A program made the position numbers and the translations under genes. This document shows, piece after piece, positions 10,850-61,219 of a stretch of DNA of 64,000 bases. Within the stretch, counting starts at the first letter, position 1. Every line of letters starts with the position of its first letter. Under the pieces are notes generated by a model. The model did not search any database and had not been told where the DNA came from. It saw nothing but the letters and a program-made list of their open reading frames with translations. Location: assembly GCA_026770705.1 (NCBI GenBank), contig JANJGN010000026.1:37510001-37574000 (forward strand), in the 5' to 3' direction. Source of the stretch: Isurus oxyrinchus (lineage: Eukaryota).

Positions 10850-11390
10850 ATGGGGAACCATCTCACTCCGCTCCTCATCATTATCTCACTTCTCAGTAAG
10901 TACTTCCTTCCCAGTAAAACTCCATTCTCCTCCTGACTGCTGTAACCGAGGTGTTACTGTTGGTGGTGATGGTGATGGTGGTGTTGATAATTGTGTTGAT
11001 CAATACGAGACTGATACTGATAGCCGTTGTTATTATTATTTCTTTTAGAATGGAGTCGCCAAGACACAGTGGAACAACCGGTTGCTGAAATAAAGGTTGA
11101 AGAAGAAAGGAATGTCACATTTACCTGCACCTTGAAAAAAAGTTCTTCTAACCCTTATGTTCACTGGTACACATCACCGCGGGAAACCTCCAATGTACAT
11201 GTTTCGTCTTGTTGGAGGTTATGTGCAAAGGAACGCCGACTTCAATGAGCGGTTTTCTTCTATGTTTGATAAAAGTAACAAGATTACCGAGCTAACAATC
11301 AACAACACACTGATCCCCGATAGCGCCGTGTATTTCTGTACCATGGAGCCCACACTGCTGCAGAGATATAGGGGATTCCGTACAAAAACT
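10850..11390 (+). pseudogene. TRAV/TRDV: TCR V segment V10, broken by a single frameshift (leader 10850-10895, V exon 11049-11350, RSS 11351-11390 with 24-bp spacer)
   Basis: MGNHLTPLLIIISLL; KWSRQDTVEQP...FTCTL...VHWY then a frame change near 11171 to HHRGKPPMYMF...RFS...DSAVYFCTMEP; CACACTG-24-ACAAAAACT. Confidence 0.88.
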
Positions 11391-12202: not shown

Positions 12203-12681
12203 CATGTGAAACTATCTCAGACGACTCATTATTATAACACACTCAGTAAGTAAATGCTTCTCAGTAAAAGGAAAACATTCTCACTCTGGCTGCCCTAATC
12301 CAAACATTATTGAAGCAAAAATGTTTGTTATGATGATGTAATGATAAATATTGTCATTGTCCATGTCAGAATGGAGCCATCAAGACTCATCGGAGCAGTC
12401 GGTACCTGAAATGACGGTTGAAGAGGAAAGGAATAAACTGCACCCTGGAAACAAGCGTTCCCAGCACTTATATGTCACGGTGCAGTCAGCAGCCCGGGCA
12501 GCCTCTACAGTGTGTGTTTTATACTTACGAAGGATAGGAAAACGGAACACCGATTTTAGAGACCGATTCTCTTTCACGTATGTTAACGAGTAGGAACGTC
12601 CTGATATTCAACACTGCCGTGTATTTCTGTGCCACGAAGACCACGCCGCTGCAGAGATATAGCGGAACCCGCGCAAAACCC
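12203..12681 (+). pseudogene. TRAV/TRDV: TCR V pseudogene V11 (V8/V10 family, internal deletions; RSS 12642-12681 with 24-bp spacer)
   Basis: Leader with stop; exon EWSHQDSSEQSVPEMTVEEERN...NTDFRDRFS...TAVYFCATK; CACGCCG-24-GCAAAACCC. Confidence 0.8.
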
Positions 12682-15600
12682 GACACTGGTAGATGCAGTG
12701 AGTGTCACTAGAGGGCGCTGCCACACTAATAATGCACAAGCAAAATCCGTCTCGACTGTGCGAGCCACAGGGGCCATTCTAAACTGCAATAAATCACAAC
12801 AATCAGCAAGAGCAAGTGAAGTCCTGCAGCATTATATTGGCAACTCACATTTATAATAAAAAATAAACTTCAGAAATGCACCATATAAAACCTTAAGTGA
12901 CCTTTATATATTTTCCCTGTCTGTTCCCTTTCATCCCCGTCTCAATTTTTACTCGGAATTGTTTAACCCTCCATCTTCCAGTCTTTTAGTTAATGATATG
13001 AAACCTTTGTTTCTGTTTGCCATATTGATCCAGAACTGCTCAAACCGAGTTTTCTATCAACAAGGGCTGTCAGGTCAAGTCAGTGACTAAGGGCGGAATC
13101 ACCCAGAAACTGCATAGCGGCATCTGACCACTTCTCAGAATCCCCAGTGGAGGGTGTCAGATCACAGGCAGTCTGCAGTGTATTATTAAACACATCACTG
13201 GATCCAGTGTGAAGATGGCGCAGTCAGTATCTAGTGCACCCGAATCGAGATTGTGTCTGATATAATTGTATGTGTGTCAGCTCCTGTTGATATAATAGCA
13301 AAAGTTTTTCTAATGCCTTAAAACAGAATCAAGCACCACTGCAATATGGATGGAATAGAGTTAGTGCAATGACACTGACATGGTTTAGTGTAATGGCAGT
13401 TAAAAATAGAAAATCCCTGTAATGTTCTGCAGGGCAGGCAGAATCTGAGGAGATAAATAGGGTTAATGTTTCATGTTAATGACAGTACATCAGAATAGGG
13501 GACCATCGCCTTGAAACTAACTCTGTTTCTCCAATCCTTTGTTAAAAGCCCGAGTGGTACATTTGGTTCTGCTCTTGCTGCCTTGAGCTGCGAGACCTGG
13601 GTTCACATTTCACTCCAGGGTTCATTGACAATGGAGTATTCGTGCAAATCAAAGCAGGTTACTAATTAGCCCCCAAAATCCTTCCGCCTTTCCACTCCTT
13701 CCTCCAAGAGTGAAGGCATGAAAAATAAACAGAATCTATGTCTACATGTTGAGTCTTTCCAGCATCGAACGTTTTTATTTCAGATTTCCAGCACCTTCAG
13801 TATGTTTCCTTTGTGCTTGTGTAATGGGAACTCGGCCCGATCAGGTCAGCATTAACTAATTGGTTGTATTCACATCCCTGAATTGAAAGGTTGTGGTTTC
13901 AAGTCCCAGTCCAGAGACTTGACCACATACCATGGGCTAATATTCACGGTGGTAATTTATATGTTAGTCTTTCTGTTCTTCATCCATTATTTTCTTAGAC
14001 TCAGAAGGAGTGAGAGGAATTAAAGACAGAGCAACTCTGGGCAGTTTCTCCATCCAGCGAAGGACGGGTTTCTGGGACATTGTTGCCGCTTTGACTTTCC
14101 CGTTCACTTCGAAAAAAACAAACAACTTCTCTCTCCTAGGATTTGCGAAGCGAGTACTAACTGTCGGGCCGGGCAAGTTTGCGGCCTGGTCTAATAATTA
14201 TCACAGAGGCAGGCTCCAGTGTATCAATAACAGAGGATGCTGTTAATCTTACATAAAGGCAGGCAAGGGGGCCGAGTAAACTTCTGGTTGTTATAAGAAG
14301 TGGAAGTGTAAGAAAGCAAAGATGTTCAGGGCCTTAGCACAGGCTTCTGTTACATGGTGAGTGACACAGGGATTTCTGCAGTAAAAACTGGATTGGAAAC
14401 ATCGTAACAGAGGCCCGTGTGACTGACTCCACCTGCTTAAGAGCTGTTATACACAAGGGGAAGACAATCATGGCGGACTCCAGAGATTTCTGATATCTGA
14501 GGGGTCAATGGTGCATCTCTCAGAGGAACAGAAAATAATCTGTTCCTTCTCATTCTTAACGACAATTCTCCATTTGCACAGACAGGCAAGGTCCGTACCC
14601 GGCAGCTTGTGGAAACCAATGTTTAAATCTTCAGCATAACACACGATTGAAAATATTAAAGACCAAAACCTCTCCAGAGGAAAAATCAGAGCCACAAGTG
14701 TTAAAGGTAATCCTGCTTTTTCTAAACAAGTTCTATCTAGTGATATTTTGTTCAAAGTAGTGGTTTGTAAATAGTAATGAACTTCTGAAGGATTCTTGGT
14801 AATTATCAACATGCACACTCAAGTACTGTCAAAAGACAGGATTAGCAGAAGATGAAAGCTGTATTATTATTCCATTTTATTCGGGCTCAATGAGGGACAA
14901 CGATCGATACAGAAAATGTGCTGGGACAATGATATAGATGAGCCATTCAATTGCTCCTATTCTCTATAATCCTTCAAATTCTACCCTCTTCAAGTATTTA
15001 TATTTGATTCATTTTACAAAGTTACTATTAGTCTGATCCCATTACCCTTTCAAGCTGTGCATTCCAGTTCAGAACAACTCGCTGTGTGAAAAAATAAACA
15101 ATCACCCTTCTGTCTTCCCGTTCAATAAAATAAATCTGTGTCCTTTGGTTACCGACCCTCCTGCCAGTTGAAATAATCTGTCCTCATCTAAACTATCAAA
15201 ACTTTCATGATTTTGAACACGTTTAATAGACACACAGAGAGGTGGAGAGAGATAAAACTGAGCGTAGGAGAGTTAAATGAAAAAGCGAGATGGAGAGAAA
15301 CAGAGGAAACAAGTGCCGAGGGAAAGAGAATGTTTTCAGGGAGTGTGTGTGTGTTCAGGGATTTGTGTGGAGGGGGTGTTGGGGTGGTGGAGAATGACAG
15401 CGAAAAATGAAAGGTAGTAAACTTTCATTTCTCTGCTTCAGAGACCCGAGGGATCTCAGTGACTGATCCACTGGCCACCCAGTTATGTCCTGGAACAGAT
15501 CACAAGAGGCTTATTTGTAAATGTCACCGTAATGTGATCTGCGTGACTCTGCTCTGACTCTGTGGCCAGATATAAGCCGCCTTGACAGATGTTCTCGCCA

Positions 15601-21215: not shown

Positions 21216-22485
21216 TTCATCAGTGATCCCCATTTCCCAAGAGCCAATTAAAGTGCTGCAAAATACTGCGGATTCTGGTAATCCAAAGCAAAACAAAAAA
21301 GGAACTCTCAGCAGGTCAGTGGGCCTCAGTTGAGAGAGAAACATATCAAACTTTCAGGCCGATGACAGGTGCAAAATCCCCCTTGGTACTATTCTTTTGA
21401 GCAGGACTTTTCTGCCCACTATCCTGGACCAATATTCATTCTTCAACTAAACTCACATATTATCTGGTTATTTTTTGCAGCTCTATTCGTGGGAGCTTGT
21501 TATGCAGAAATCACCGGATGCATTTCCAACATTCCACAACAGTGACAAAACTTCAACTAACCTACATCAATGAGTTTTAAGGGCTTTAGGACGTCCTAGG
21601 GTCGTGAGCAGCATTCTATAAATGCAAATTATTTCTAAATATTAACATTTTAAAATGCTAGTTGTGATATGTTGAAAACTCAGAGAACAATATGATCGCA
21701 GGTCACTCCTCTGGCTGCTGATTTAACTTGTCCAGTTTAAATGGGTTAAATCTTCAATCAAATTGACATTCAATGGATGTTCAAGGATTCTTTATTGATT
21801 GTGATAGGACTTTTGGAATTCAATTCTTAAGTCAAATTTATTTTTATTTATGTGAAATAAATAACATCTACTCTTATGGATGTTGAAGAAGTTTCCATTC
21901 ATTTTGTACCAACTGTCAATATTCTTGAAATAAACCTTTGTTTTGAATTGAAACTAATCAATATAAGTGTCTACGTTTATCTGGTTTTGCTGCCATGAAC
22001 ACTTCATTAAAACCAGTGAGCCATTTATGTAAATAAACACAGAAATTGAAGTCCCAGATTAGATTCTGGAGAGACGAAAACACAGAAAATATTTCCCCAC
22101 CAACACAGCACAGAAATAGAATCAAATATGCAAATACATCAACCGATTTCAGTAACAATTATTTTTTGGGCATTTTTTAAATCAGTTATATGAGAATGAT
22201 GTCACGATGATATCAATGTTCAGAATTAAGAAGGATTCCCACTTATCATAAAGTATAACAACACGGCAAATGTGTTTGTACGACTGTCCTGTAACCTATG
22301 TCTCTCTGCCTCTTTCTCCTCCCTGGTTCTGTGTCTCGCCTCTCCACCATGGGTCATTGCCTTTACTCCACAGCATGAGGTCAATGTCTAGCCAATGTAT
22401 TCTCTCAGCCCGATTCATGCACTTCAAACTAAATGGATCGAATGAAATGGATTGAAATCTGTAGAGGGAACTTTACTCTAAATCT

Positions 22486-24453
22486 GGTTAAGAAGAAGAG
22501 AGAGGTGTATAGCAGGAATAGGCAACAAGAAGCAAATGAGGTACTTGTAGAGTATAGGAAATGTAAGGAAATACTAAAAAAGGAAATCAGGAAGGCAACA
22601 CGAAGACACGAGGTTGCTTTGGCAGATAATGTGAAGGTAAACCCGAAGGATTTCTACAAGTATATTAAGAGTAAAAGGATAGTAAGGGACACAATTTGTC
22701 CCCTTGAAGATCAGAGTGGTCGTCTATGTGTGGAGCCTCACGAGATGGGGGAGATCTTAACCCGTTTTTTTGCATCAGTATTTACTCAGGAAACTGACAT
22801 TGTGTATAAGGAAGGAAGGGAAACAAGCAGTAGTTTCACGGAACATATAGAGATTAAAGTGGAGGAGGTGCTTGCTGCCTTACAGCGAATAAAGGTAGAT
22901 AAATCCCAGGCCTGACATGATATGCCCTCGGACCTTGACGGAGACTAGTGTAGAAATTGCAGGGGCCCTGTCAGAAATATTTAAAATGTCCTTAACCACG
23001 GGTGAGGTGCCGGAGGATTGGAGAGGAGTTGTTCCGTTGTTTAAAAAAGGCTCCAAAAGTAAACCAGGTAATTACAGGCCAGTGAGCCTGACGTCAGTAC
23101 TAAGTAAATTATTGGAAGGTGTTCTGAGAGATCGGATATATAATTATTTGGACAGCCAAGGGCTGATTAAGGATAATCAGCATGGCTTTGTGCGTGGTAG
23201 GTCGTGTTTAATGAACCTTGTAGAGTTTTTCGAGGAGGTTGCCAAGAAAGGAGATGAAGGAAAGGCTGTGGATGTTGCTTACATGGACAAGGCCTTTGAC
23301 AAGGTCCCTCATGGGAGGTTAGTTCAGAAGGTTCAGACACTTGGTAACCATGGAGAGGTTGTAAACTCGATTCGAAATTGGCTGCGTAGGAGAAGACAGA
23401 GAGTGGCATTTGATGGTTGCTTCTCAGACTGGAGGTCTATGACTAGTGGTGTGCCTCAGGGATCTGTGCTAGGACCATTGTTGTTTGTTGTCTATATCAA
23501 TGATTTGGATGATAATGTGTTGAATTGGATCAACAAGTTTGCTGATGACACTAATATCGGAGGGGTTGTGGACAGCAAGGAAGGTTTTCAAAGCTGGCAG
23601 AGAGATCTGGACCAACTGGAAAAATGGACCAGAAAATGGCAGATGGAATTTAATGCGGAAAAGTGTGAGGTGTTACATTTTGGAAGGTCAAACCAAAGTA
23701 GGACATACACTGTAAATGGTAGGGCACTGAGGAGTGCAGAGGAACAAAGGGATCTGGGAGTTCAGATACATAGTTCCCTGAAAGTGGCGTCACAGGTAGA
23801 CAAGGTTGTAAAGAAAGCTTTTGTCATACTGGCCTTCATAAATCAAAATATTGAGTATAGGAGTTGGGATGTTATGGTGAGGTTGTATAAGACATTGGCG
23901 AGGCCAACTTTGGAGTATTGTGTGCAGTTCTGGTCGCCTAACTACAGGAAGGATATCCGTAAGATTGAGAGAATGCAGAGAAGATTTACGAGGATGTTGC
24001 CGGGTCTTAAGGAGTAGAGTTACAGGGAAAGATTAAACAGGTTAGGACTTTATTCCTTGGAGTGTAGAAGAATGAGGGGAGATATGACAGAAGTTTACAA
24101 AATTATGAGGGGTATAGACAGGGTAAATACGAGTAGGTTCTTTCCATTTAGATTAGGAGAAATAAACATGAGAGGACATGGCTTTAGGGTGAAAGGGGAA
24201 AGGTTTAGGGGGAACATTAGGGGGAACTTCTTCACTCAGAGCGTGGTGAGAATGTGGAACGAGCTACCATCTGACGTGGTAAATGCGGGCTCACTGTTAA
24301 ATTTTAAGAATAAATTGAATAGATACATGGATGGGAGAGGTCTGGAGGGTTATGGACTAGGTGTAGGTCAATGAGACTAGTGGAATAATATTTTGGCACA
24401 GACAAGAAGGGCTGAATGGCCAGTTTTCTGTGCTGTAGTGTTCTATGTTCTAT
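22486..24453 (+). mobile_element. CR1 LINE, 5'-truncated, RT domain largely open (22917-24017)
   Basis: NYRPVSLTS, KAFDKVPH, SGVPQGSVLGPLLF, KFADD motifs; TTCTATG tail. Confidence 0.95.
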
Positions 24454-24789
24454 CTTGTTTTGAGCATTCACTGACCTGGGAGTGCTTGATGGGGAACTGA
24501 AGGGGAAACTTTACTCTGTATCTAACCTGTGTTGTGCCCAGTAGCGAGGATTTGATGTCGCAATGCCAAATGATCTTTCCCTCTATCTAACCTCTGCTGT
24601 CCCGGCCTTTGGATGATTGATTGGACAATATAGAAACTCTGAATCTAACCCGTGCTGTACGTGCTTGGGTGTTTTTCATGTGGCAATGTAGATGGAATTT
24701 TATATTATTAATGTAGCTCCATGTTGCACCTGCCTGGGAGTGTTTGATGGAGCCATAGGCCCTGCCCGGGAAATTGCAGGTCGATTAGC

Positions 24790-26170
24790 CCGACCTCAGT
24801 CATTGGCAAGATTTTAAAGGCCATTATTAAGGATGAGATTTCAGAATACTTAGAAGTGCATGGTAAAATCGGGCAAAGTCAGCATAGTTTCATCAAGGGG
24901 AGGTCATGCCTGACAAATCTGTTAGCATTCCTTGAGGAGGTAATGAGTAGGCTAGACAAAGGAAAGCCAATAGATGTTATCTACTTGGACTTCCAGAAGG
25001 CCTTTGACAAGGTGCCGCACAGGAGGCTGCTCAGTAAAATAAGAGCCCATGGTGTTAAAGGCAAGGTAATAGCATGGATAGAAGACTGGCTGTCTGGCAG
25101 CAGGCAGAGAGTGGGGATAAGGGGGGCTTTCTCAGGATGGCAGCCGGTGACTAGTGGAGTTCCGCAGGCGTCAGTGTTGGGACCACAACTTCTCACTTTA
25201 TACATTAATGATCTAGATGAAGGAACTGAGGGCATCCTGGCTAAGTTTACACATGATACAAAGATAGGTGGAGGGACACGCAGTATTGATGAGGCGGGGA
25301 GGCTGCAGAAGGATTTGGACAGGTTAGGAGAATGGGCAAAGAAGTGGCAGATGGAATACAACGTGGGCAAGTGTGAGGTCATGCACTTTGGTAGGAAGAA
25401 TAGAGGCATAGACTATTTTCTAAATGGGGAGAGAATTCAGAAATCTGGAGTGCAAAGGGACTTGGGAGTCCTAGTCCAGGTTTCTCTTAAGGTTAACTTG
25501 CAGGTCAATGCAGTAGTTAGGAAGGCAAATGCAACGCTGGCATTTATTTCGATAGGACTAGAATTTAAAAGCAGGGATGTGCTGCTGAGGCTTTATAAGG
25601 CTCTGGTCAGACCACATTTAGAATATTGTGAGCAATTTGGGGCCCCATATTTCAGGAAGGATGTGCTGGCCCTGAAGAGGGTGCAGAGGAGGTTCACGAG
25701 AATGATCCCAGGAATGAAAGGCTTAACATATGAGGAACGTTTGAGGACTCTGGGTCTATATTCGATGGAGTTTAGAAGGATGAGGGGGGATCTGATTGAA
25801 ACTTACAGAATACTGAAAGGCCTGGATCGAGTGGATGTGGGGAAGATGTTGCCATTAGTAGGAGGGACTAGGAGCCGAGGGCACAGCCTCAGAGTAACCT
25901 TTTAGAACAGAGATGAGGAGAAACTTCTTTAGCCAGAGAGTGGTGAATCTATGGAATTCATTGCCACACAAGGCTGTGGAGGCCAGGTCATTGAGAGTAT
26001 TTAAGAACGAGATAGATAGGTTCTTGATTGGTAAGGAGATCAAAGGTTACGGGGAGAAGGCGGGAGAATGGGGTTGAGAAACTTATTGGCCATGATTGAA
26101 TGGCGGAGCAGACTCGATGGGCCGAATGGTTTAATTTCTGCTCCTATGTCTTATAATCTTATCGTCTTAT
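24790..26170 (+). mobile_element. CR1 LINE, 5'-truncated (RT ORF 24856-25905)
   Basis: DFQKAFDKVPH, SGVPQASVLGP, FTHD (degenerate FADD); TCTTAT tail. Confidence 0.95.
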
Positions 26171-33904: not shown

Positions 33905-34260
33905 GGGTGTTGTAGTAATGTCACTGGACTAGTAATCCAGAGACTCAAGCGATTCTTCTGTGGACACGAATTCAAATCCCACCATGGCAGGGAGTGGAAT
34001 TCAATAATAAATCTGAGATTGAAAACTGGTCCCAGTGAAGGGAGCCGTGAAACTGTAATCGATTGTGGGGAATAAACTCATCTGGTTCACAAATGCCCTT
34101 TAGATAAAGAATTCTGCCACCCTACACGTGATTCCAGAACCACAGCAACATGGTCGACTCTAACAGCCTTCTGAAATGACCCAGCAAGGCACTCAGTTCA
34201 AGTGCAATTAGGGACAGGGAACAAATGCCTTGCCAGCGACTTTCACATCCCGTGAAAGAG
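33905..34260 (+). mobile_element. tRNA-derived SINE
   Basis: GGTGTTGTAGTAATGTCACTGGACTAGTAATCCAGAG...TTCAAATCCCACCATGGCAG head; tail CACATCCCGTGAAAGA. Confidence 0.75.
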
Positions 34261-36074
34261 TAAAGGGGCAAAAAATCACGCAAACATATATGCTTATCCA
34301 TTACAAAATGTGTCCTCTCCCTAAGTCCCCTCTGCTAGTATGTCTATATTTCTTTCTATCCATTCATCTATCCATCACAATAATATGTTGGAGAGATCCT
34401 CCAATGAGCCATTGATGCCAACAAGGTGTCAGAGAAGCCGGATAACTTTCCTTTCCTGGGAGATTGGAATAGTTCATATAGGTTCGCAACTTAAAAAATA
34501 GAACTGACTCCAGTGTTGTTGCTGGGTAGATTTGTTATAAGTAGGACTTGTTGACAATGTTAAGGGTTTGAAGTTGGCTTGCAGCCAAGCGGCTAGTACT
34601 GAGGAAACAGATCTTTCATTTACTGCACAAACCCCCAGGTGCTTCCTGTAAATAACCTTGGACATTCGAGCGTCCCTGACTGCAGCCGGCTGGCTTACTG
34701 CCAAATACTGTGTGGGGCAGATTAGCCTGGATATGAATGAACAAAATGGGATTTAGCCATTCAAAAATAAATATTTCGGCCGCACATGAAATGTGCATTT
34801 TAAATGGTATTTCAACCAAGGAAATATTTGAATGAATGCCGTGTTCACTATGAGATTACGCACGATCAGGAAATAGTAAGTTGACTATATACTATTTAAT
34901 TTATATTACTTCTAAGTAAAGGGCATCCCAGTTATTAAAGCCTGTTTATTAATAACTTCATGGAGTGCGAGAGAGCGATTTTGATGGTCCCAAATCCACA
35001 ATCTAATGCGATGACTAGAATGGCAAAAAATTAAAAGAAAATCATGGAATTGCCTTGAACCCGCAGGAATTCCTTGAATACTCTCCGCGTTGTACACCTT
35101 ATTTAACCTGAGGGGTCTCTTAAACCTGATTAGCACCGTGAACTGTCCACAGAACCATAGAACCATAGAACATTACAGTACAGAAAACAGGCCATTCGAC
35201 CCTTCTAGTCTGTGCCGAAATATTATTCCGCTAGTCCAGTTTAATTTTTGATGATTTCGATTATATAACAGTCCCTCTCATAGCTCCCTATGTGTGGAGA
35301 AATGACCAGTTCATGACCTCTATCAGTGGAAAATAAAGCATTTATTCTTGTGATATTGTGTAATATGCCGCAAAGCCCTGATACCCTGCATTCCCAATAC
35401 CAGTGAATGGCAGACAGCCGGTATCCAAGTAAATTAAAAGCAATGATTTGGATGCTGAAGGATAACTTTGCTGATCTCCGTGTCCGTTCTGATTCATTAA
35501 TTTTTGTGTGTCAAAAGTTGTAAATTTTACATTTCTCCGTCAACTCACTGTTTGATTATCAGGCAGGTGGGCTTCTTTTACCGCTAATTTTCACATGGCT
35601 GTCTTAGGGTCAGGAGCAGTTCGACAAATGCAAGGAGAGACGTTGTATAATGTGAGAAGATTCTTCTTATCTCCGGACCCAAATTGTGCAGCAATAGCCA
35701 CCCACACAGTAAATAGAATCACCTTGTTCATCCCCGCATTTAGTTACATAAATCAATATCAGTTCCCATGACTGATGAAACTTAATTACTGTAAGGAGAT
35801 AGAGACCCGGAGTCGCTGCAAAACAGACTGACAGTCCCTTTATTCCCTGATGATGTAATTTATTTTTTTAGATTCAACCCCTTGTGAAATAGCGTAGAAA
35901 TAAACGGGCTTAATTTTCAATGGAATTAGTTTTTTTATTAACAGATGTTCAACTGAAATTTCACTATTAGAATCTCGGGAGACATTACAGTGAATCCATT
36001 CAGCCATACAGATAAAATGTCCACTTTTAACAATAACCTGTTGTCAATATCTGAGTCCATTCTGTTGGGGATAT

Positions 36075-36170
36075 GGAAGGGAGGGCGTGGATCCAGTCGC
36101 CGCCTCCACCAGGGTATCAACAGACGGCGCCTGGAAACCCGCCCTCTTCTGCCGGGTATTTAAATGCCGC
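36075..36170 (+). promoter_or_regulatory. Putative IGHV promoter (GC boxes, TATA-like TATTTAAA at 36157-36164, no octamer)
   Basis: GGGCGTGG and CCCGCCC boxes plus TATTTAAA ~95 bp upstream of the leader ATG; no ATGCAAAT, as expected for shark VH promoters. Confidence 0.55.
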
Positions 36171-36255
36171 TCACTGGGACCGGAATCCAACAGTCCGGCA
36201 GCTGGTTTGTTCACTGAGTTGTGTACAGAACCATTTTCCCCAAATGGCCAGAAGG

Positions 36256-36734
36256 ATGAGGCCGGCGATTTCTCTCAGTTTGTTGCTGACTTTCTTATCC
36301 CGTGAGTAGTTTTATTGTCCAAATCTCTCACTGTTACTGTCTCAGTGTTAGCCTCTCTCTGGAATGTGACAGAGTCAGGAATCATTTCGCCAGGATTAAT
36401 CCTCGGGGTTTTTGATATGTTTTTACAGGTGTGCAGTCGGATGTTGTGTTCACTCAGCCAGAGGCACAGACCGGGCGTCCCGGAGGCTCCCTGAGACTGA
36501 CCTGTGAAACCAGTGGGATCACGCTTAGTAAAACTTACATGTACTGGGTCCGACAGGTTCCTGAAAACGGGCTGGAGTGTCTTCTTGAGTACTATAGCTC
36601 GACAAGCTATACCTACGCCCCAGCAATTAAGAATCGATTTACGGCGTCCAAAGACACTTCAACGAACATCTTCTCCTTGGACATGACGAACCTGAAGATT
36701 GAAGACACCGCCATCTATTACTGTGCAAGAGACA
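36256..36734 (+). CDS. IGHV: Immunoglobulin heavy-chain V segment, shark IgM-type, intact (leader 36256-36301, intron 36302-36428, V exon 36429-36734)
   Basis: [45 protein letters not shown]...[20 protein letters not shown]...[40 protein letters not shown]; GT-AG phase-1 intron. Confidence 0.96.
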
Positions 36735-36773
36735 CACAGCGAGAGGAACCAGGGCTGGACCCGAACAAGAACA
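36735..36773 (+). other. 23-RSS of IGHV
   Basis: CACAGCG-23-ACAAGAACA. Confidence 0.92.
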
Positions 36774-37132
36774 GTTCGAGAGGGACTCAGCAACTTCCAT
36801 CATAACCTGACGGTCAGTGCTTGATTTAACTGTAATGATCCGAACCAGACCATGAACCGCTTCTGACAAAAGTACAACAGCGAATTTAGTAAAACCTAAC
36901 AAACCAATCGATATAATGAGCTGAGCTTTTGGCTGTGTTTAATTTATATTTACTGTTAACAGCTTCCACAAATACAGACCTGGATATAATGCTCATTTTG
37001 CTATGTCTAATACTTGGAGGGTGTCTCCTTTCGTTTCCTTTAGTAAATTGTTGCATTAGTTCTAAATTAGATCATAAGTAAACGTCTATTTGAAGTGAAT
37101 AATGAGTGACCTATTGAACAGAGAGTGGGTGC

Positions 37133-37160
37133 AGTTTTAGTGCTGGTGTATTTCACAGTG
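37133..37160 (-). other. 12-RSS 5' of the D-J segment
   Basis: AGTTTTAGT (37133-37141) + 12-bp spacer + CACAGTG (37154-37160), 359 bp after the VH RSS. Confidence 0.85.
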
Positions 37161-37223
37161 CAGGCACAAGTGCTCTCGATCGCGACTACTGGGGACAAGG
37201 GACCATGGTGACAGTGACTGCAC
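37161..37223 (+). CDS. IGHJ: Pre-joined D-JH segment (GTSALDRDYWGQGTMVTVTA) with phase-1 donor
   Basis: GACTACTGGGGACAAGGGACCATGGTGACAGTGACTGCAC|GTAAG is a shark JH (WGxG). Only 23 nt separate it from the 12-RSS heptamer, with no D 3' RSS or JH 23-RSS in between. Confidence 0.9.
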
Positions 37224-37926
37224 GTAAGAAACATACATTTATTTAGTAACTGCTTTCCTTGAATTTTTGTTTTATAATGTCTATTTTGATAATTAATTCC
37301 TTCAGTGAAACGTGAGTTTGATGGATTCTGTATTGAGATTTTTTAATACAGACGAGATAATTCATTCACACAGACACAAACGCCAGTCTATTGATGAAAT
37401 CATTGTTCAAACGCACTTTTTAAAGGACATATCCACCAACAGTTGTCCCTATCACATGATGACCCGACAAACACACTAAGCAATATTCTTACTGAGAAAG
37501 TAATTTAAGTTACAGACGTGCCAAACATTCCCACAACAAATAAACAAATAAGATGGGAACTCACATCCGAGCTTTTAAACTCAACATTCACAGTTTCCAA
37601 ATAAGTAGCTATGAACCTCTATCGAAATCCACCATAATAGTCTCTAATAATAGATCGTACAAAATTGTTCGAAAATGAACTGACACTAAAGAAAATTTCC
37701 CATACCTTCTGACATGGGCTGCTCGAGGAATGTCAAGGAACGACTGCTGTGGTAATAGTTACAGAGATAGGTTGCTAAATGTCACGAACTTAACAATAGA
37801 CATACATTAAAAATTAAATTAGAGATTACATTAATAGCTTAAGAAAGAAAAGTGAATACAAAAGAGCAGTAAGAAATCCTGGATTAATAAACAATCTAAT
37901 TTATTTCGGGCGCTATACCCACGTAG

Positions 37927-38054
37927 ATTGCACAGATCGCATCTGGATTGAAGGTTCTGACGATGATAACGGCAACATCTGGACAACCGCTTCCACATTC
38001 ATCATCCTGTTCTTCCTGAGCATGTGCTACAACACTGCCGTTACTCTGGTGAAG
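37927..38054 (+). CDS. IgH membrane exon TM1
   Basis: acgtag|AT TGC ACA GAT CGC ATC TGG... = CTDRIWIEGSDDDNGNIWTTASTFIILFFLSMCYNTAVTLVK|gtgaaa; acidic spacer plus WTTASTF..LF.LS..Y..AVTLVK antigen-receptor TM motif. An in-frame alternative acceptor starts the exon at 37936. Not in the ORF track. Confidence 0.9.
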
Positions 38055-38192
38055 GTGAAAAGATTCAATCTGCTCACACTTCAAACTGACAGAAGCGGTT
38101 TGAAAAGTCTGTCAATGTTACAATGATTAAAACCCTAACATAAATGTCCCAGATCCTAAACATCTGCTTCATTATTTTAACTCCTTTTACAG

Positions 38193-38201
38193 ATCGAATG
38201 A
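38193..38201 (+). CDS. IgH membrane exon TM2 (IE-stop), followed by 3' UTR
   Basis: Polypyrimidine ctccttttacag|ATC GAA TGA; two-codon exon typical of IgH TM2 (normally VK*). Confidence 0.75.
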   Translation: ME

Positions 38202-38606
38202 TCGGTTGAATTTTGGACACTGTAGACTTTCGTCAGCTCTTTATTGAGATCTCTGCATTACGAATTTAAAATATGTCCTCTTGGTGACTCTCTATGTAAA
38301 ATACCTTCAGCTTTTGATTCCGAATTTGTGACTAAGGCAATCATGAGGGTATTTCTGATTTACTGTTTGAAATGTGCGAGATAATTATGACTGTACTGTA
38401 ACGGTTGCTTATAATTTCCCAGTAGTTTCAATTATCTGTAACTTTCGTCATTCCTCATTCACAATTATTCCCTTCCCTTTATGTTGAGCCCCTGTTTTCT
38501 CTTCCTGGTGCCTGTTACAGTTGTACATACAGATGGCAGCTCAGAGCGACTGTGTTCCGTTCTCAAAGTGGCTCACAGTCATTATATTCACTTCAGTTCA
38601 CTTTAA

Positions 38607-38649
38607 AATAAAATTTGTCTGTAAAATGTTCTCTGAAATTGTCAATAAA
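38607..38649 (+). terminator. Polyadenylation signals of the membrane-form transcript
   Basis: AATAAA at 38607-38612 and 38644-38649, ~400 bp after the TM2 stop. Confidence 0.6.
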
Positions 38650-39059
38650 CCTTGAATGTGAAACGACCTATGACTTTGCTGAACTCCTTTCTCCCAAACC
38701 GAGAGACGCTCCCAGACAGGAATTTTTCACCAGTCCTGTCTGGGATGTGTTTGAACCCAAGGCCCTTCGGAGAAAGAGTCACTGCGCCACCGAGCGGCCC
38801 ATCCGTGTAAAGAGATCTTTATCTTAGCTTTTTTATGGCAAACTCCAGAGGCAGAATGATTACACAGCGAGGAGAACCTCGTGATTTCACTCAAACTCTG
38901 GCCTGTCACAGTCACATGTCAGGTAATTGTAAACAGAAGGGATCTGCTTCTTCGGAGGCCGATGCAGGACAGTATATGGAGGAAGAAAGTTTCCGTTACA
39001 CTGTCTCATCAAACAGCCCCAGGGTCGGTGCAACAGATGTTCGATACAGAGTAAAGCTT

Positions 39060-39545
39060 TTTTTTCTCGTTATTCTTTCATGGGATGGGGTGTCACTGGC
39101 AAGGCCAGCATTTGTTTCTTATACTAATTGCCCTTGAACTGTTTGGCTTTCTCGGCCATTTCAGAAGGCCATTAAGAATCAACTACATTACTGTGAGTCC
39201 GGAGTAACATATAGGCCAAGCCGGGTAAAGGTGGCAGATTTTCTTCCCTAAGGAAATTAGTGGTGTAGATGGATCTTAAATGACAATCGATGATAGTTGC
39301 CATAGTTACCATTTCCGAGTGCAGCTTTAAATTTCAGATTTAATTAATTGAATTCACATTCCAGCAGCTGCCATGTTGGGAATTGAACCCAAGTCCCCAA
39401 AGCATTATCTTGGGCTCTCTCTCCCTTGTCCAATTAAACACTCATAACGCAGAGACGTCACAATCCACCTTCCCGAAGGCAATTCGGGATGAGCAACAAA
39501 TGCTGGTCCAGCCAGCCACGCCCACATCCCATGAATGAATAATTA
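39060..39545. mobile_element. tRNA-derived SINE fragments
   Basis: Reverse copy of the 33905 SINE family plus a forward CACATCCCATGAATGAAT tail. Confidence 0.65.
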
Positions 39546-41615
39546 AACGCATATAAAACGCAGACAGAACACTTGACACAGACCATCATGATTCCTGGAG
39601 ACTGGGGCCAATCTGACACAGGCACATCACCGAGCAATAATCCTGCAAATGATTACCAAAGTTTTGCGTTTATCAGGAACACCAGAGAGCACAAATCGTG
39701 GAAATTCCCAGGCACTGCGCCCTGCCTGACGCAACATGCAAGCATAATTCATGAGAATTGTTCCCAGAGAATGGTATCCATCTGACACAGAGACTCCAGC
39801 CTCACAGTTTATGTAAGCACACAATCAGACACTTTCTGTCCCTGTTCTGGAGATCCCAACACTCCGATTTCTGTTCTGCACACGCTGACAGTCTGAACAT
39901 ACATCTGTACATACGAACTGGGAGCAGCCGCTGGCCCCTCTGGTTTGCTCCACCATTTAACAAGATCATGGCAGATCTGATTGTAATCTCAGCTCCACAT
40001 TCCCACCGAACCCCATAACCTTTGATCCTGTCTTAAAAATACTCAAACAGTCTGCTTGCGCAGTTTTTGACAGAGTTCCAAAGACTGATGACCGTCTCAG
40101 AGAAAATAAATCCTCATCTTTGTCGTGAATGGGGGGACCCCTTATTTTTAAACAGTGACCGCAGTTAACAATAAACTCTATTTCCACCTTTTCTGCTCTA
40201 GTCATCAACCCTGTTTCTCAGTCTCATATTTCGATTCTGAACTTTCTCCCTGATCAGCTCCACTTTCTTTGATACCATCCTCCAGATCTCTCTGAAAATC
40301 ATCCCAGGGATTCTCTCTCCCTGCTCCATTCCCCCTGATACCATCCTCCTGAACTCACTGAACATCACCCCAAAGATCCTCTTTCCCTGCTCCATTCCCT
40401 CTGATACCACACCGCCCCCTCCCCCCACCCCACGCCCCGCGAACTCACTGAACATTAGCCTGGGGAGTTCGCTCCACCTCCTCAGAGATTCCTTCAGACC
40501 CTCCCAGTCACGGGAATATCAGCAGAGATTTCTGTTCAGGCGCCAATATCTTCTAACATTTTCCTTCTGATGCAGTGCTGGTTTTCCTTTAACACACCCT
40601 TTGTAAGGCAGCAGTCCAGAATAGATTTTAAATTTAAGTAGCAAGCAAGCAAGTTTACCGCAGCACCTACTCAACAGTGGAATTCCAAAGGAAATCCTCC
40701 ACCTTTGGTTGCTGGACACAGCAGGCATCTGCTAAAGTGGATGGAGGCTTCCCCAGCGTTGTTTTACACAGTCCTCTTGGGTTTTACATGGCCCACCAAC
40801 ATAGCCTTCCATTCCTCTTCATGTATGTTCCTCTATCTTCCATCATTCTATGTGCCTTTCAAAATTTACTTTTCCCATGATATAAAAATGTTTCATGTTG
40901 CAAATATGGCCAGTACCTTTAGGAAAATAAATACACTGCTTGGCCTTGCATACTGTACATACTAAGACCTCATCCATGTTTACTCAATAGCATTTAAAAT
41001 ACCTTTTTCCTCTAATTTCTTTTGATAATTTCAAGCTTTCAGTCTATCTGACTCTAATTCAATTAAATTACACAGACAGAACCATCTATACACACACCCA
41101 TAAACCTACTTTACAATACACCACAATAATATAATGAAAAGATCTGTCAGTTTCACGACACTACTGAACTGTCTGCTCTGTAAGTTTGGTCAACGATGGA
41201 GTCCTTGAGAGATGCCAGGTGGAATTCTGTCTGTGAAATATCGGCTCTAACTGAAAATATTGGTGATTATTGTTGGGTTGTCATTATGGCAGACTAATAT
41301 GTTTTTATTGTGTTGATTTAATTGTCATTGTAACTGTTGCCCTTCTGTACAGTTCGTGCTATATTGATTCCAAAATTATTCGTCTCAGTTTTCCTACATT
41401 CCCAACTCAGAAATGCAATACATGTCCAGTTGCATAAAATAGATGGACTTCACTTTAATTAGTCCACAGTTAGTAATGCTTGCTTGTTGATTTCATGAGA
41501 ATGAAGCCTTGCATTCTCCCTAATCATCAAATGATGGCATCAATCAAAATTGGTTACAACCAATGACGATTACTATATTGTTATGGATGGTTAATTGGTA
41601 TTTTGAATCAATTGA

Positions 41616-42025
41616 TTGTGTGCATCTGTCTGTCTTCACGTCTGTTCCTGTGTGTCTGGCTGTGTGTGTATCAGTGTGTCTGTCTGTGTGTCAGTGTGTG
41701 CGCCTGTCTGTTTCTATGTGTGTGTCTGCCTGTGCGTGTGTGTCTGTGTGTCTGTGCCTTTGTGTTTGTGTGTGAGCGTGTGTGTATGTACGTGTGTGTG
41801 CCTACCTGTGCCTTTGTGTGTGTGTTTGCCTGTGCATATTGTCTGTGTGCCTGTGTCTTTGTGTTTGTGGGGTCTGTGTGTGTGCATGTATGTCTGTGTG
41901 TGTGTGTGTGTGTGTGTGTTTCTACGTTTCTGTGTGTGTGTTTGTGTGTGTGTTGGCCTGTCTGTTTTGTTTGTTTTTGTGTTTTGCGAGTGTTTGTGCA
42001 TGTGGATGTGTTTGTGTATGTGTGG
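41616..42025. repeat. Imperfect (TG)n microsatellite
   Basis: Direct reading. Confidence 0.95.
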
Positions 42026-42689
42026 ACCGAGATAGTCGAGGATTATAACAATTTGGATATTTTAGCGAACCTTTTTATATCAGAAGACTGAACTCATTAA
42101 TTCAGGTAAGATACCAGTTATATAGTATCCACAAATTAAATGGAGCTTCACACGGTGTAATGGTGTACTCCAGTTCTATTAATACATTCAGAGAATGAAT
42201 TTCTATTCACTGCTTTGAATCGTATATTTCTCAGGAATTTGGTGTACTACGCAGTTGAATTATTTTTATTCTCATTTTATTTGAAATTAATATTTATATG
42301 ACTGTTTGTGTGGGAACTTACCAGATAACAGCAGGGCTGACAACGTTTGGGGAACATTTCCATCAGATCAAGGCGCACAACCCGGAACTGTGTCAGCAAT
42401 GGGAGGGTGAGGAAGAGACTTTGGCCGTTGTTGGGTGATGTCAAACCACCAACTTTTCTGCTAATGTCAGAACGCACTCACCATTTATGCCACAAAGACG
42501 GGGTACAGCAAAGGAATCAAGGGCTTTAGGGATCGGCCGGGAAATTGGTGTTGAGGCCCAGGATCCGCCGTGATCTTATGAAGTAACTGAGCAGGCTCGA
42601 CGAGCCTTTTGGCAGGCTCCTGGTCGGATTGCTTATGTTTTCAATCACTGCCGATACCAGTCAAGACTATGACGTGCTTATAGCATTGT

Positions 42690-56615: not shown

Positions 56616-59039
56616 CGCCACAGTGTCCTTAACCCTGTCCGGAATGCTAAACTGCGCTGTAACTCAGCAGCAATCTGGGTCTCTATTGCGGAGAAATGGA
56701 ATACAGCTGCTGTTCTCAGGAACGCTGAAGGGAGACTGATGTAACAACATAATCTTAAAATGCCCTAGCACCCATGTATTCAAACACTGGCAAAATAGGC
56801 CCTTCCAACATCCGATCTCGGGCCCCTTTTTAAACGAGAAAACGAATTCATCACAATTTGCTTCACTCTCTTAATGATCTATTTCTTCTCCCTTTCATTA
56901 AATTACTCAATTCTCTTTTTAAAAAGTCATTTCTGCAGAATCCATGCTTGCACTGCCTTAATCCACATGGTTCACATGACGATTTGGACTTGAGTTCCTA
57001 ACATACTTTACCAGATGAACATGATGTAATTATGCAATTGATCTCATATCGCATTTGCGAAAGTGTTATTTTTTCAACCTTACTATTTTTACAATCTTAT
57101 TGCTTTTGCTCCATACCCCTTCAACCGAGGGTGCGATATTACAGAGGAAAATGTTTGTTCCAAAGTTTAACAGGGCCCTGCCAAGATCACGTGCTTCAAT
57201 TGTTCCTTTACTTCATTTGGTTTGAAATAATTTTGTTTCTGGACCGGAATCTAACAGAGGATAAATATTTGTGGAACAAACTGAGCAGTGCTGAGCTACC
57301 AGGGTGTCTGAAGTCGTTGTCTGAGGGTCCATGTCACTTGTTGCAAGGAAGCAATGCTTTGTTTCACCCTGGTGCCTCAGGTTGTTTTGAATTTCACAAT
57401 GTAGACGTGTCCGTCCAACAAATGTCTCCGAGTGCAATGCTTTCTGCTCAATCAGGAACATCCTTCTCATCCTTGGAAGCCAAAATTAAAGAAACGTGGT
57501 GTTTGTTCAGTTATTCTATATTTAATCTTCATATTTTCTCTGTTATTGATGCCTTCGTCTGAATTGAAACTCTCTGAACTATACTCCAGCCCCGAATTGC
57601 AAATATGACTGATAGACAAAAGATTATCAGTCATATGGTTCTCATTTGAAATTGAGCACTGTTAGCTTTTAAACAAAATCCAAAAATTTTACTGGGAATA
57701 GGCTTGAGAATGATGCGTTAATTAGATCTGATCACTCTTTCTCTGTCTTTGTGAGTACACGTTACAATGAGATACCTTTGACATGGTGAGAGTAACTGTG
57801 TTAAGCTGCATCGAAAGACGTGCTGATTTTGCTGCAGATAAAAGCAAGAAACTGCGGGTGCTGGTAATCCAAAACAGAAATAAAAATACTTGGAAAAACT
57901 CAACAGGTCTGGCAGCATCTGCGGAGAGGAATAGAGTTAAAGTTTCAACTCCGTATGACTCTTCAACAGCATTGTCAAAGTGCCTTTAGCACAAGGACTG
58001 CAGTAAATCAAGAAGGCCTACAATCAGCTTCATGTGGAGCAGGTTGGATTTCACGGGATGTGGGTGTTGCTGGCGAGGCCAGCATTTATTGCCCATCACT
58101 AATTGCCCTTGAGAAGGTGGTGCTTCTTGAGCTGCTATAGTCTATGTAGTGTAGGTACACCAGACTGCTGCTAGGAAGGGAGTTCCAGGATTTTGATCAG
58201 CTGATAGTGAAGGAACGGTGATATAATTCCACGTCAAGATGATGACTGGCTTGGAGGAGAAATTTCAGGTGGCAGTGTTCCATGAGTCCGCTGGCCTTGT
58301 CCTTCTAGGTGATAAAAGCCGTGTGTTTGAAAGGTGCAGTTGAACAAAACTTAATGAGTTGCTGCATCTCATAGATGGTACACATTGTTAGCACTCTGCA
58401 TCTGTGGTGGAGAGAGTGGATGTTTAAGCTGGTTGGTGGAGTGTCAATCATGCAGGCTGCTTTGTCCTGGATGTTGCCAAGCTTCCAGCATGTAGTTGGA
58501 GCTGCGCTCATCCACCATATTTGCTGGCCTTGCTCGCAAAAGCCCACATCCCAAGAATTAATTTGAAAACCTAAATGGAAATGAATTAAAAGCCTTTACT
58601 GAAATGATTGCTATGAAGAGAATGCTTGTTTACTTTGTATGGGTTGTGTCTGTTTAGCAACCGAACATCACAGAGAAATCTACCTCCCCTGGCAGTCCCA
58701 CACATTGGGAATTTTGGGCCTTAACTGGGCTGAAAACTACACAGAATATTCTCCCCCATCCCCATTCCTTTTCAAACTAATACAACAATAAAGATCCACT
58801 CAGGAGGCCAGGGATAGGCAAGGGTATCTAACTCCAATCCTGAGGCAAATATTGAAAATATTATGTTGTTTAAACAGAATGTGTGCAGGGAGAACCGAAA
58901 AAGAATTTCATGCCCTTGAGTTTTTGCCAGGATGCAGGAAAACACTTATCGATACCTGCTCATTAATGATGGCCATCCTTCCCACAACTCCGCGCGCCTC
59001 AGAAACTGCTCTATCCAACTCGCTCCTTTCCCCAGGTGC

Positions 59040-60158: not shown

Positions 60159-61219
60159 GATATTTGAACAGGAAGATTTGCTGACAGGAAACTCAAACCA
60201 AAAACCACGTCAAAATCTGACAGATTCACTCAATACATCAGGAGCTGAATATCATTGAACATTTAATATGGACAGAGAAATGTTTTAACCAATTGCGCAG
60301 CCTGAAAAAGCATCTCACCATTCATAGTGTGAATAAACTGTGTGTGGATGAGGTTTGATCTGACCATCCAACATGGACAGCCACGAGGACACTGGCAACA
60401 TGGAGAAATCATGGGGACTGTGGGAAGGGATTTGGTTCCCCATCAAAGCTGGAAATTCATCAACGCAGTCACACTGGGGAAAGGCCGTTCTCCTGCTCCG
60501 TGTATGGGAAGGGATTTACTAATTCATTCAACCTTCTGAGACATCAGCGCGTTCACATTAAGCAGAGTTCAGTCACCTGCTCCGTGTGTGGGAAAGCAAT
60601 CGGTCATTCATCAAGCTTTCAGAGACACCAGCAAACTCACAGTGGAGAGAGGCCATTCACCTGCTCTGTGTGTGGGAAGAGATTTACTCTGTCATCCTAC
60701 CTGCTGACACACCAGCAAATTCACACGAGGGGAGTCCATTCACCTGTTCCTTGTGTGGGGAGGGATTTAATCGATCGCCTAGGCTTCAGAAACACCAACG
60801 CATTCACACTGGGGAAAGTCCATACACCTGCTTTATCTGTGGGAAGGGATTTAATCGGCCATCCAAATTACTTACACACCAGCGAATTCACACTGGGGAG
60901 AGGCCATTCACCTGCTCCATGTGTGGGAAGGGATTCACTAATTCATCCGACCTGCTAACACCAGCGAGTTCATACTGGTGAGAGGCCATTCACATGTTCC
61001 ACATGTGGAAAGAGATTCACTCGGTCATCCCACCTTCTGACACATCAACTTGTTCATACTGATCAGATACCCTTTGAATGTTCATACTGTAAGAATACCT
61101 TTAAAAGTAAAAAGGATCTGCTGACACACCAGCGAGTTCACACTGGGGAGAGGCCATTCACCTGCTCCGTGTGTGGGAAGGGATTCACTCAGTCAGGTTC
61201 CTGGCTGACACACCAATGA
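60159..61219 (+). pseudogene. C2H2 zinc-finger (Kruppel-type) gene exon, ~9-10 fingers, with frameshifts and stops
   Basis: Repeated [16 protein letters not shown] linkers across ORFs 60500-60958 and 60586-60981 and on to 61219; frameshifts near 60730 and 60960; acceptor ttttatag at 60158. Confidence 0.9.

Follow-up and report, generated by a model that had tools for sequence, protein, structure and literature searches.

How does an immunoglobulin (Ig) heavy-chain unit come to have a variable (V) exon, a joining (J) exon and transmembrane (TM) exons without any constant (C) domain between them, and does such a unit encode a receptor? This question is raised by a locus of Isurus oxyrinchus, which we analyzed within a window of 64,000 nucleotides (assembly GCA_026770705.1, contig JANJGN010000026.1, positions 37,510,001 to 37,574,000 of the forward strand); all positions below are counted from the first letter of this window. 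The unit contains, in this order, a leader, an IgM-type heavy-chain V exon (VH) with a recombination signal sequence (RSS) of 23-nt spacer (23-RSS), a 12-RSS with an exon formed by germline fusion of diversity (D) and J segments (D(D)J), 703 bp of DNA, the mu TM1 and TM2 exons and the polyadenylation (poly(A)) signals. The unit is real, it is conserved in a related organism and it is transcribed. [quoted passage not shown] The initial annotation of the locus had proposed a working single-V membrane receptor. This is not supported so far, as the RNA-like contigs are unrearranged, the J–TM1 intron has the depth of the V–DJ spacer and no V–J–TM protein was found in the two protein collections that were searched.

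Organization of the unit

The region 35800-39200 was read and its pieces were translated, and the recombination signals were located by an RSS scan; all elements of the unit lie on the + strand. A TATA-like box (TATTTAAAT, 36157-36165), ~85-95 bp 5' of the leader ATGs, is a putative V promoter that was recognized from the sequence only. The leader exon (36244-36301, ..LSLLLTFLS) starts with an ATG at 36244 or at 36256 and ends in a phase-1 donor, with GTGAGT from 36302. The VH exon (36429-36734) is intact by translation, protein searches and Pfam, and is followed by its 23-RSS (36735-36773), composed of the heptamer CACAGCG at 36735-36741, a 23-nt spacer and the nonamer ACAAGAACA at 36765-36773. 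Beyond the V–DJ spacer (36774-37132) a 12-RSS faces the DJ (37133-37160), with the nonamer AGTTTTAGT at 37133-37141, a 12-nt spacer and the heptamer CACAGTG at 37154-37160; on the opposite strand the scan reads CACTGTG, 12 nt and ACTAAAACT, with its end at 37160. The germline-fused D(D)J exon (37161-37223; ..DRDYWGQGTMVTVTA; ..AGTSALDRDYWGQGTMVTVTA) ends in the phase-1 donor CAC/GTAAGA, the GT of which is at 37224.

The J–TM1 interval (37224-37926) is the usual place of Cmu1-4 and the secretory tail, and contains no Ig exon in its 703 bp. It is followed by the mu TM1 exon (37927-38054; (H)CTDRIWIEGSDDDNGNIWTTASTFIILFFLSMCYNTAVTLVK) with its phase-1 acceptor, the TM1–TM2 intron (38055-38192), the coding part of TM2 (38193-38201), which translates as Ile-Glu-stop, and the 3' untranslated region (UTR; 38202-38666) with AATAAA at 38607-38612 and 38644-38649. 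The anatomy of V, fused DJ and TM1–TM2 that the initial annotation had described was thus recovered element by element, each in its place, by sequence reading, translation and the RSS scan. Its phase arithmetic also holds: the J donor and the TM1 acceptor are both phase 1 and an in-frame splice between them is possible. Joining of V to DJ without trimming would likewise keep the frame (1 + 2 bases), a match to be expected in one of three cases. Yet Ig exons follow phase 1 as a general rule, at J and TM1 as elsewhere, and the in-frame fit is generic and no sign of design.

The missing constant region

In tblastn searches with ten shark IgM and VH proteins no Cmu exon was found in the whole 64-kb window, and the matches to the Ig unit are confined to the V exon, J and TM1. 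The 703-bp interval has a G+C content of 33%, and its longest stop-free run in any frame is 56 amino acids. Both results agree with the initial annotation, which had noted no C-domain exon and no secretory tail. TM1 aligns with the membrane IgM of Chiloscyllium (P0023: ..DKSS/DSIDRTWIEDYEDDNSNIWTTASTF..) and of Scyliorhinus right up to the acceptor, which indicates that the acceptor at 37927 is canonical. The KIE tail and the LSM motif are common to the unit and to P0052, a four-domain IgM of Scyliorhinus torazame. We considered the KIE tail and the YN motif as signs of decay and rejected this, since P0052 itself ends in KIE and P0024 has YN; judged from these alignments, the KIE tail and LSM motif are a subclass trait and not decay.

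The contiguity of the interval was assessed from sequencing runs, for which the evidence throughout consists of assembled contigs compared with the locus only; the depth of such contigs is a crude measure, and rare forms are dropped from them. The informative runs are X5 and X18, from another sample of the same organism, and X8, a DNA run from a related organism with ~2% divergence. In X5, 37194-37921 is covered by a contig of 727 nt and 36747-37223 by one of 476 nt; X18 has a contig on 37208-37594, and the DNA of X8 gives contigs on 37187-37348 and on 37550-37980 (431 nt), the latter reaching 54 nt into TM1. The path from J through the interval to TM1 is therefore present in short-read contigs of a second individual and of the ~2% divergent relative. 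The Cmu deletion probably predates the split of the two organisms.

Within the interval, contigs of the DNA runs reach ~7x the depth of single-copy sequence on 37516-37616, and loose ends occur at 37579. This may be a short repeat, or a segment common to the introns of other IgM clusters; it could mark a deletion breakpoint.

Transcription of the unit

Runs X5 and X18 behave as RNA. A joint of GT..AG type across the leader intron (36301>36429) and a contig with TM1 spliced to TM2 (TM1>TM2) occur in them, each probably of paralogous origin. Neither the leader intron nor the DNA on the two sides of the unit is covered by their contigs, and coverage ends at ~38580-38666, close to the poly(A) signals. 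The contigs that are specific to the locus span from the V exon (36484-36642) to the 3' UTR and are all unrearranged. The V–DJ spacer is transcribed in germline form (36747-37223 in X5, 36847-37150 in X18), with depths of 29.7 and 5.1 in X5 and X18, respectively, versus 31.8 and 8.1 for the J–TM1 interval. The J–TM1 and TM1–TM2 introns are both retained in these RNA-like contigs, the second of them in the X18 contigs 38002-38102 and 38077-38477.

A joint between J and TM1 (37223>37927) was not found in the contigs of the two RNA-like runs, which may miss rare forms, and neither was a V>DJ joint of the locus itself, of which rare rearranged forms may likewise escape contigs. No contig over the promoter, the leader exon or the leader intron is assignable to the locus, and the one on 36196-36290 belongs to a paralogue. 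The V-exon contig is 2-3x deeper than the spacer contig, which is no more than a hint that the V is also part of other transcripts. If a germline transcript were spliced, a stop at 36803 would lie far 5' of its exon junctions and make it prone to decay, so that the missing J>TM1 joint is a weak negative. From these contigs we infer a sterile germline transcript, presumably driven from the V promoter; such transcripts are known to start from the V promoters of unrearranged Ig genes in sharks (PMC5192425).

The VH domain and the DJ exon

The VH exon has neither stop nor frameshift and retains Cys22, Trp36 and YYC. It matches the Pfam V-set (E=2.7e-17), it is 70-76% identical to shark IgM VH from Scyliorhinus, Chiloscyllium and Heterodontus, and its best solved relatives are antibody heavy chains; by these comparisons of sequence it is an ordinary IgM-type VH. 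Its peculiar residue is a Cys in the place of the near-invariant Trp47 (GLECLL, codon 36578-36580). W47C is common to this VH and to its best match, the catshark protein P0001 (S. torazame scyTo_0022151), and a Cys47 VH subfamily may span shark species. W47C was first read as decay. This reading was then weakened, as the closest catshark V has Cys47 as well, and the 7 departures from consensus over 57 conserved VH columns are within the range of other shark VH sequences (0-12). Apart from W47C, the residues of the VH/VL interface are conventional and hydrophobic, and the domain thus does not look adapted to standing alone.

In the DJ exon the Trp codon is preceded by 29 nt of coding sequence, versus 14 nt in the unrearranged J of a paralogue (loose end at 37184). 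Together with the 12-nt RSS spacer, this length points to a D(D)J fusion in the germline. The J-type coding end is extended by D-derived bases and a D-type 12-RSS replaces the J RSS, as in the partial germline joining that has long been known for shark Ig genes (PMC5192425). The only V>J joint among all contigs is in the related organism, where one DNA contig of X8 contains the end of a V (..TACTGT), 28 letters and a J (GCGACTACTGGGG..), with a joint at 36724>37182 that is in frame and a depth of about a third of the single-copy level. This contig is probably a germline-joined VDJ paralogue in the relative.

Origin of the unit

The unit lies downstream of V segments of TCR V-alpha/delta type, in the same (+) orientation and with RSSs of 23/24-nt spacer. 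These same-strand V segments with 23-RSSs place the unit in a V array of the TCR alpha/delta type, where the initial annotation had also located it. [quoted passage not shown]

In the mechanism that we propose, an IgM-type cluster would have lost Cmu1-Cmu4 and the secretory tail by genomic deletion, while the leader, the VH with its 23-RSS, the fused D(D)J with its 12-RSS, the mu TM1/TM2 exons and the poly(A) signals would have survived. Unrearranged, what is left would give the sterile transcript, presumably from the V promoter. The VH may serve TCR delta; if used at all, it would most likely rearrange in cis to a downstream D-delta/J-delta, like VH segments that lie within TCR delta loci, and this step would delete the DJ–TM part. 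The DJ and TM exons would most likely be young, still-intact passengers of the deletion.

How much weight do the open frames have? A paralogue with the TM1 sequence FYSTAVTLVK, spliced to TM2, is ~98% identical to the locus in TM2 and the 3' UTR, which indicates that the unit is a young copy. Many other paralogous contigs have 90-99% identity on the V and TM1 exons. With ~1% change per lineage over ~430 coding bases, we estimate that well under one disabling hit is expected. For a young copy at ~2% divergence intact frames are therefore expected without selection, and they say little about function.

Several points weigh against a decayed cluster with passenger exons. The promoter-like box, leader, V, both RSSs, splice sites, TM exons and poly(A) signal are all intact, with the untrimmed V–DJ join in frame, and the same layout is kept in two organisms. 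The contigs are unable to show rare spliced or rearranged forms, and the absent J>TM1 joint is weak evidence. As the closest catshark V has Cys47 too, a V subfamily may have been maintained, although this would speak for an ongoing role of the V (such as with TCR delta) more than for any claim on the TM exons.

On the deletion reading, what entered the TCR alpha/delta V array would have been a whole IgM cluster, beyond a V segment, and its constant exons would have been lost afterwards. The unit would then be a tangible intermediate on the way by which VH genes were recruited to TCR delta, and would support cis over trans rearrangement as the source of shark Ig–TCR delta chimeras. The locus also lets one ask cleanly if a V domain displays without a C domain, as its junction sequences are unique: a product, if it exists, would be a new receptor architecture, and if it does not, the locus would be a dated example of Ig cluster decay.

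Relation to known systems

The unit resembles the canonical elasmobranch IgM cluster (VH-D1-D2-JH-Cmu1-4-TM1-TM2) in its IgM-type VH with a 23-RSS, in having D/J within ~0.4 kb, in its mu TM1/TM2 exons, 3' UTR and putative V promoter, and in having close paralogues in the same genome. It differs by the loss of all four Cmu exons and the secretory tail, by a J–TM1 distance of 703 bp and by its place among TCR V segments. What it has in common with the VH-delta and shark TAILV genes and the Ig–TCR delta chimeras is a V of VH type that has a 23-RSS, lies within a V array of TCR alpha/delta in the orientation of the TCR V segments and is accompanied by no IgH constant gene. VH-delta and TAILV genes are described as lone V segments, whereas this unit still has a DJ, mu membrane exons and a poly(A) site of its own, and its V falls among ordinary IgM VH sequences. 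Partially germline-joined shark Ig clusters (VD-J, VD-DJ, VDJ; nurse shark IgM1gj) similarly have D and J fused in the germline, with a 12-RSS facing the 23-RSS of V. In the unit, however, a V-(DJ) arrangement is combined with complete loss of the C exons, while IgM1gj lacks Cmu2 only.

Truncated forms of membrane IgM, such as teleost Cmu1-3-TM, zebrafish VDJ-Cmu1-TM1-TM2 and P0029, have TM joined to an upstream exon other than Cmu4, as a spliced product of the unit would. These keep at least Cmu1, mostly by alternative splicing, whereas the DNA of the unit itself has no C exon. The zebrafish VDJ-Cmu1-TM transcripts are known (PMC5192425). P0029 (Chiloscyllium punctatum chiPu_0016370, 276 amino acids) is a gene model in which V-DJ-Cmu1 leads to mu TM1/TM2 without Cmu2-4, with a Cys in the TM1 stalk; its V is degenerate, with a deletion of 4 amino acids and YSC for YYC, and the model represents either a truncated cluster or exon skipping. 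P0029 is the closest precedent to a V–J–TM chain, and a receptor without any C domain would be new. The two protein collections, queried with V, with TM1 (against 1.84 billion representatives), with the whole of P0029 and with its TM part, gave no V–J–TM protein, although clustering may hide such proteins and an unrearranged locus would not be annotated in this way.

Alternative explanations

Among the alternatives, the one that survives best, which we still regard as unlikely, is a working single-VH receptor, diversified by RAG and tethered directly to the mu transmembrane segment (V-DJ-TM1-TM2) in a lymphocyte subset. RAG would join the VH to the DJ 0.4 kb away, and the J donor of the resulting VDJ exon would splice to TM1. 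The product would be a membrane chain of ~170 amino acids, with a single V domain, an acidic stalk that contains one Cys, the mu helix and the KIE tail; it might dimerise via the stalk Cys and signal through CD79. Such a chain would fit the intact elements and their compatible phases, the transcription of the unit with use of its own poly(A) region, and the layout conserved in the relative. The TM segment keeps the polar pattern of the mu type, the KIE tail is that of a bona fide catshark IgM, and P0029 also joins a V-DJ-Cmu1 straight to TM with a Cys in the stalk. Against it, neither the J>TM1 nor the V–DJ joint of the locus is present in the contigs, and the intron has the same depth as a spacer that cannot be spliced. 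Position -1 of the J donor is a C. Compatible phases are a general property of Ig exons, and in a copy only ~2% away from its paralogue intactness carries no weight. The VH/VL interface is conventional and hydrophobic bar W47C, and a V–J–TM protein is absent from the databases searched.

Collapse of the Cmu exons out of the assembly between J and TM1 is very unlikely: Ig clusters are multi-copy and hard to assemble, and paralogous contigs with 90-99% identity on V and TM1 are many, yet independent contigs from both organisms carry the path between J and TM1 at a depth like that of single-copy DNA. Just as unlikely is a use similar to NAR-TCR, in which the local VDJ exon would be spliced onto a downstream, leaderless supporting TCR V to give a two-V TCR delta chain; doubly rearranging NAR-TCR does occur in shark TCR delta loci (PMC5931798), yet neither a V-like exon nor an RSS was found by the RSS scan and tblastn over 25 kb downstream of the unit, TM1 is the first acceptor past J and the transcripts end at the poly(A) region of the unit itself.

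The surrounding window

The window contains no TCR D, J or C. Upstream of the unit, two V segments on the + strand are intact and have a 23-RSS: for the one at 215-507 the best single-domain PDB matches are TCR alpha chains, while for the one at 1516-1850 structure matches did not discriminate its class. Pfam detects a V-set exon on the - strand at 2984-3265, and four V pseudogenes with stops or frameshifts, likewise with 23-RSSs, belong to the array on the + strand (4206-4472, ~9150-9440, ~11050-11350 and ~12380-12766). Between the TCR V segments and the IgH unit, 22433-25905 (+) holds retroelement copies with two reverse-transcriptase open reading frames (Pfam RVT_1, E=1e-30 and 2e-19).

Self-comparison of the flanks gave interspersed repeats only, and no duplication unit around the locus. 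The unit is flanked by inverted copies of a repeat at 33971-34275 and 39058-39387 (67% identity), of which more copies are found near 58050, 59880 and 63870; in view of these further copies the repeat is probably a common element similar to short interspersed nuclear elements and no boundary of the unit. Run X19, a coral metatranscriptome, contains 8% of the sampled words of the stretch, perhaps through a common repeat or contamination. At 41567-42088 (+) an open frame of 174 amino acids, rich in Cys and Val, arises from TG/CA-rich simple sequence and is almost certainly no gene. At 60359-61216 (+), 22 kb 3' of the IgH unit, tandem C2H2 zinc-finger coding sequence extends over several frames.

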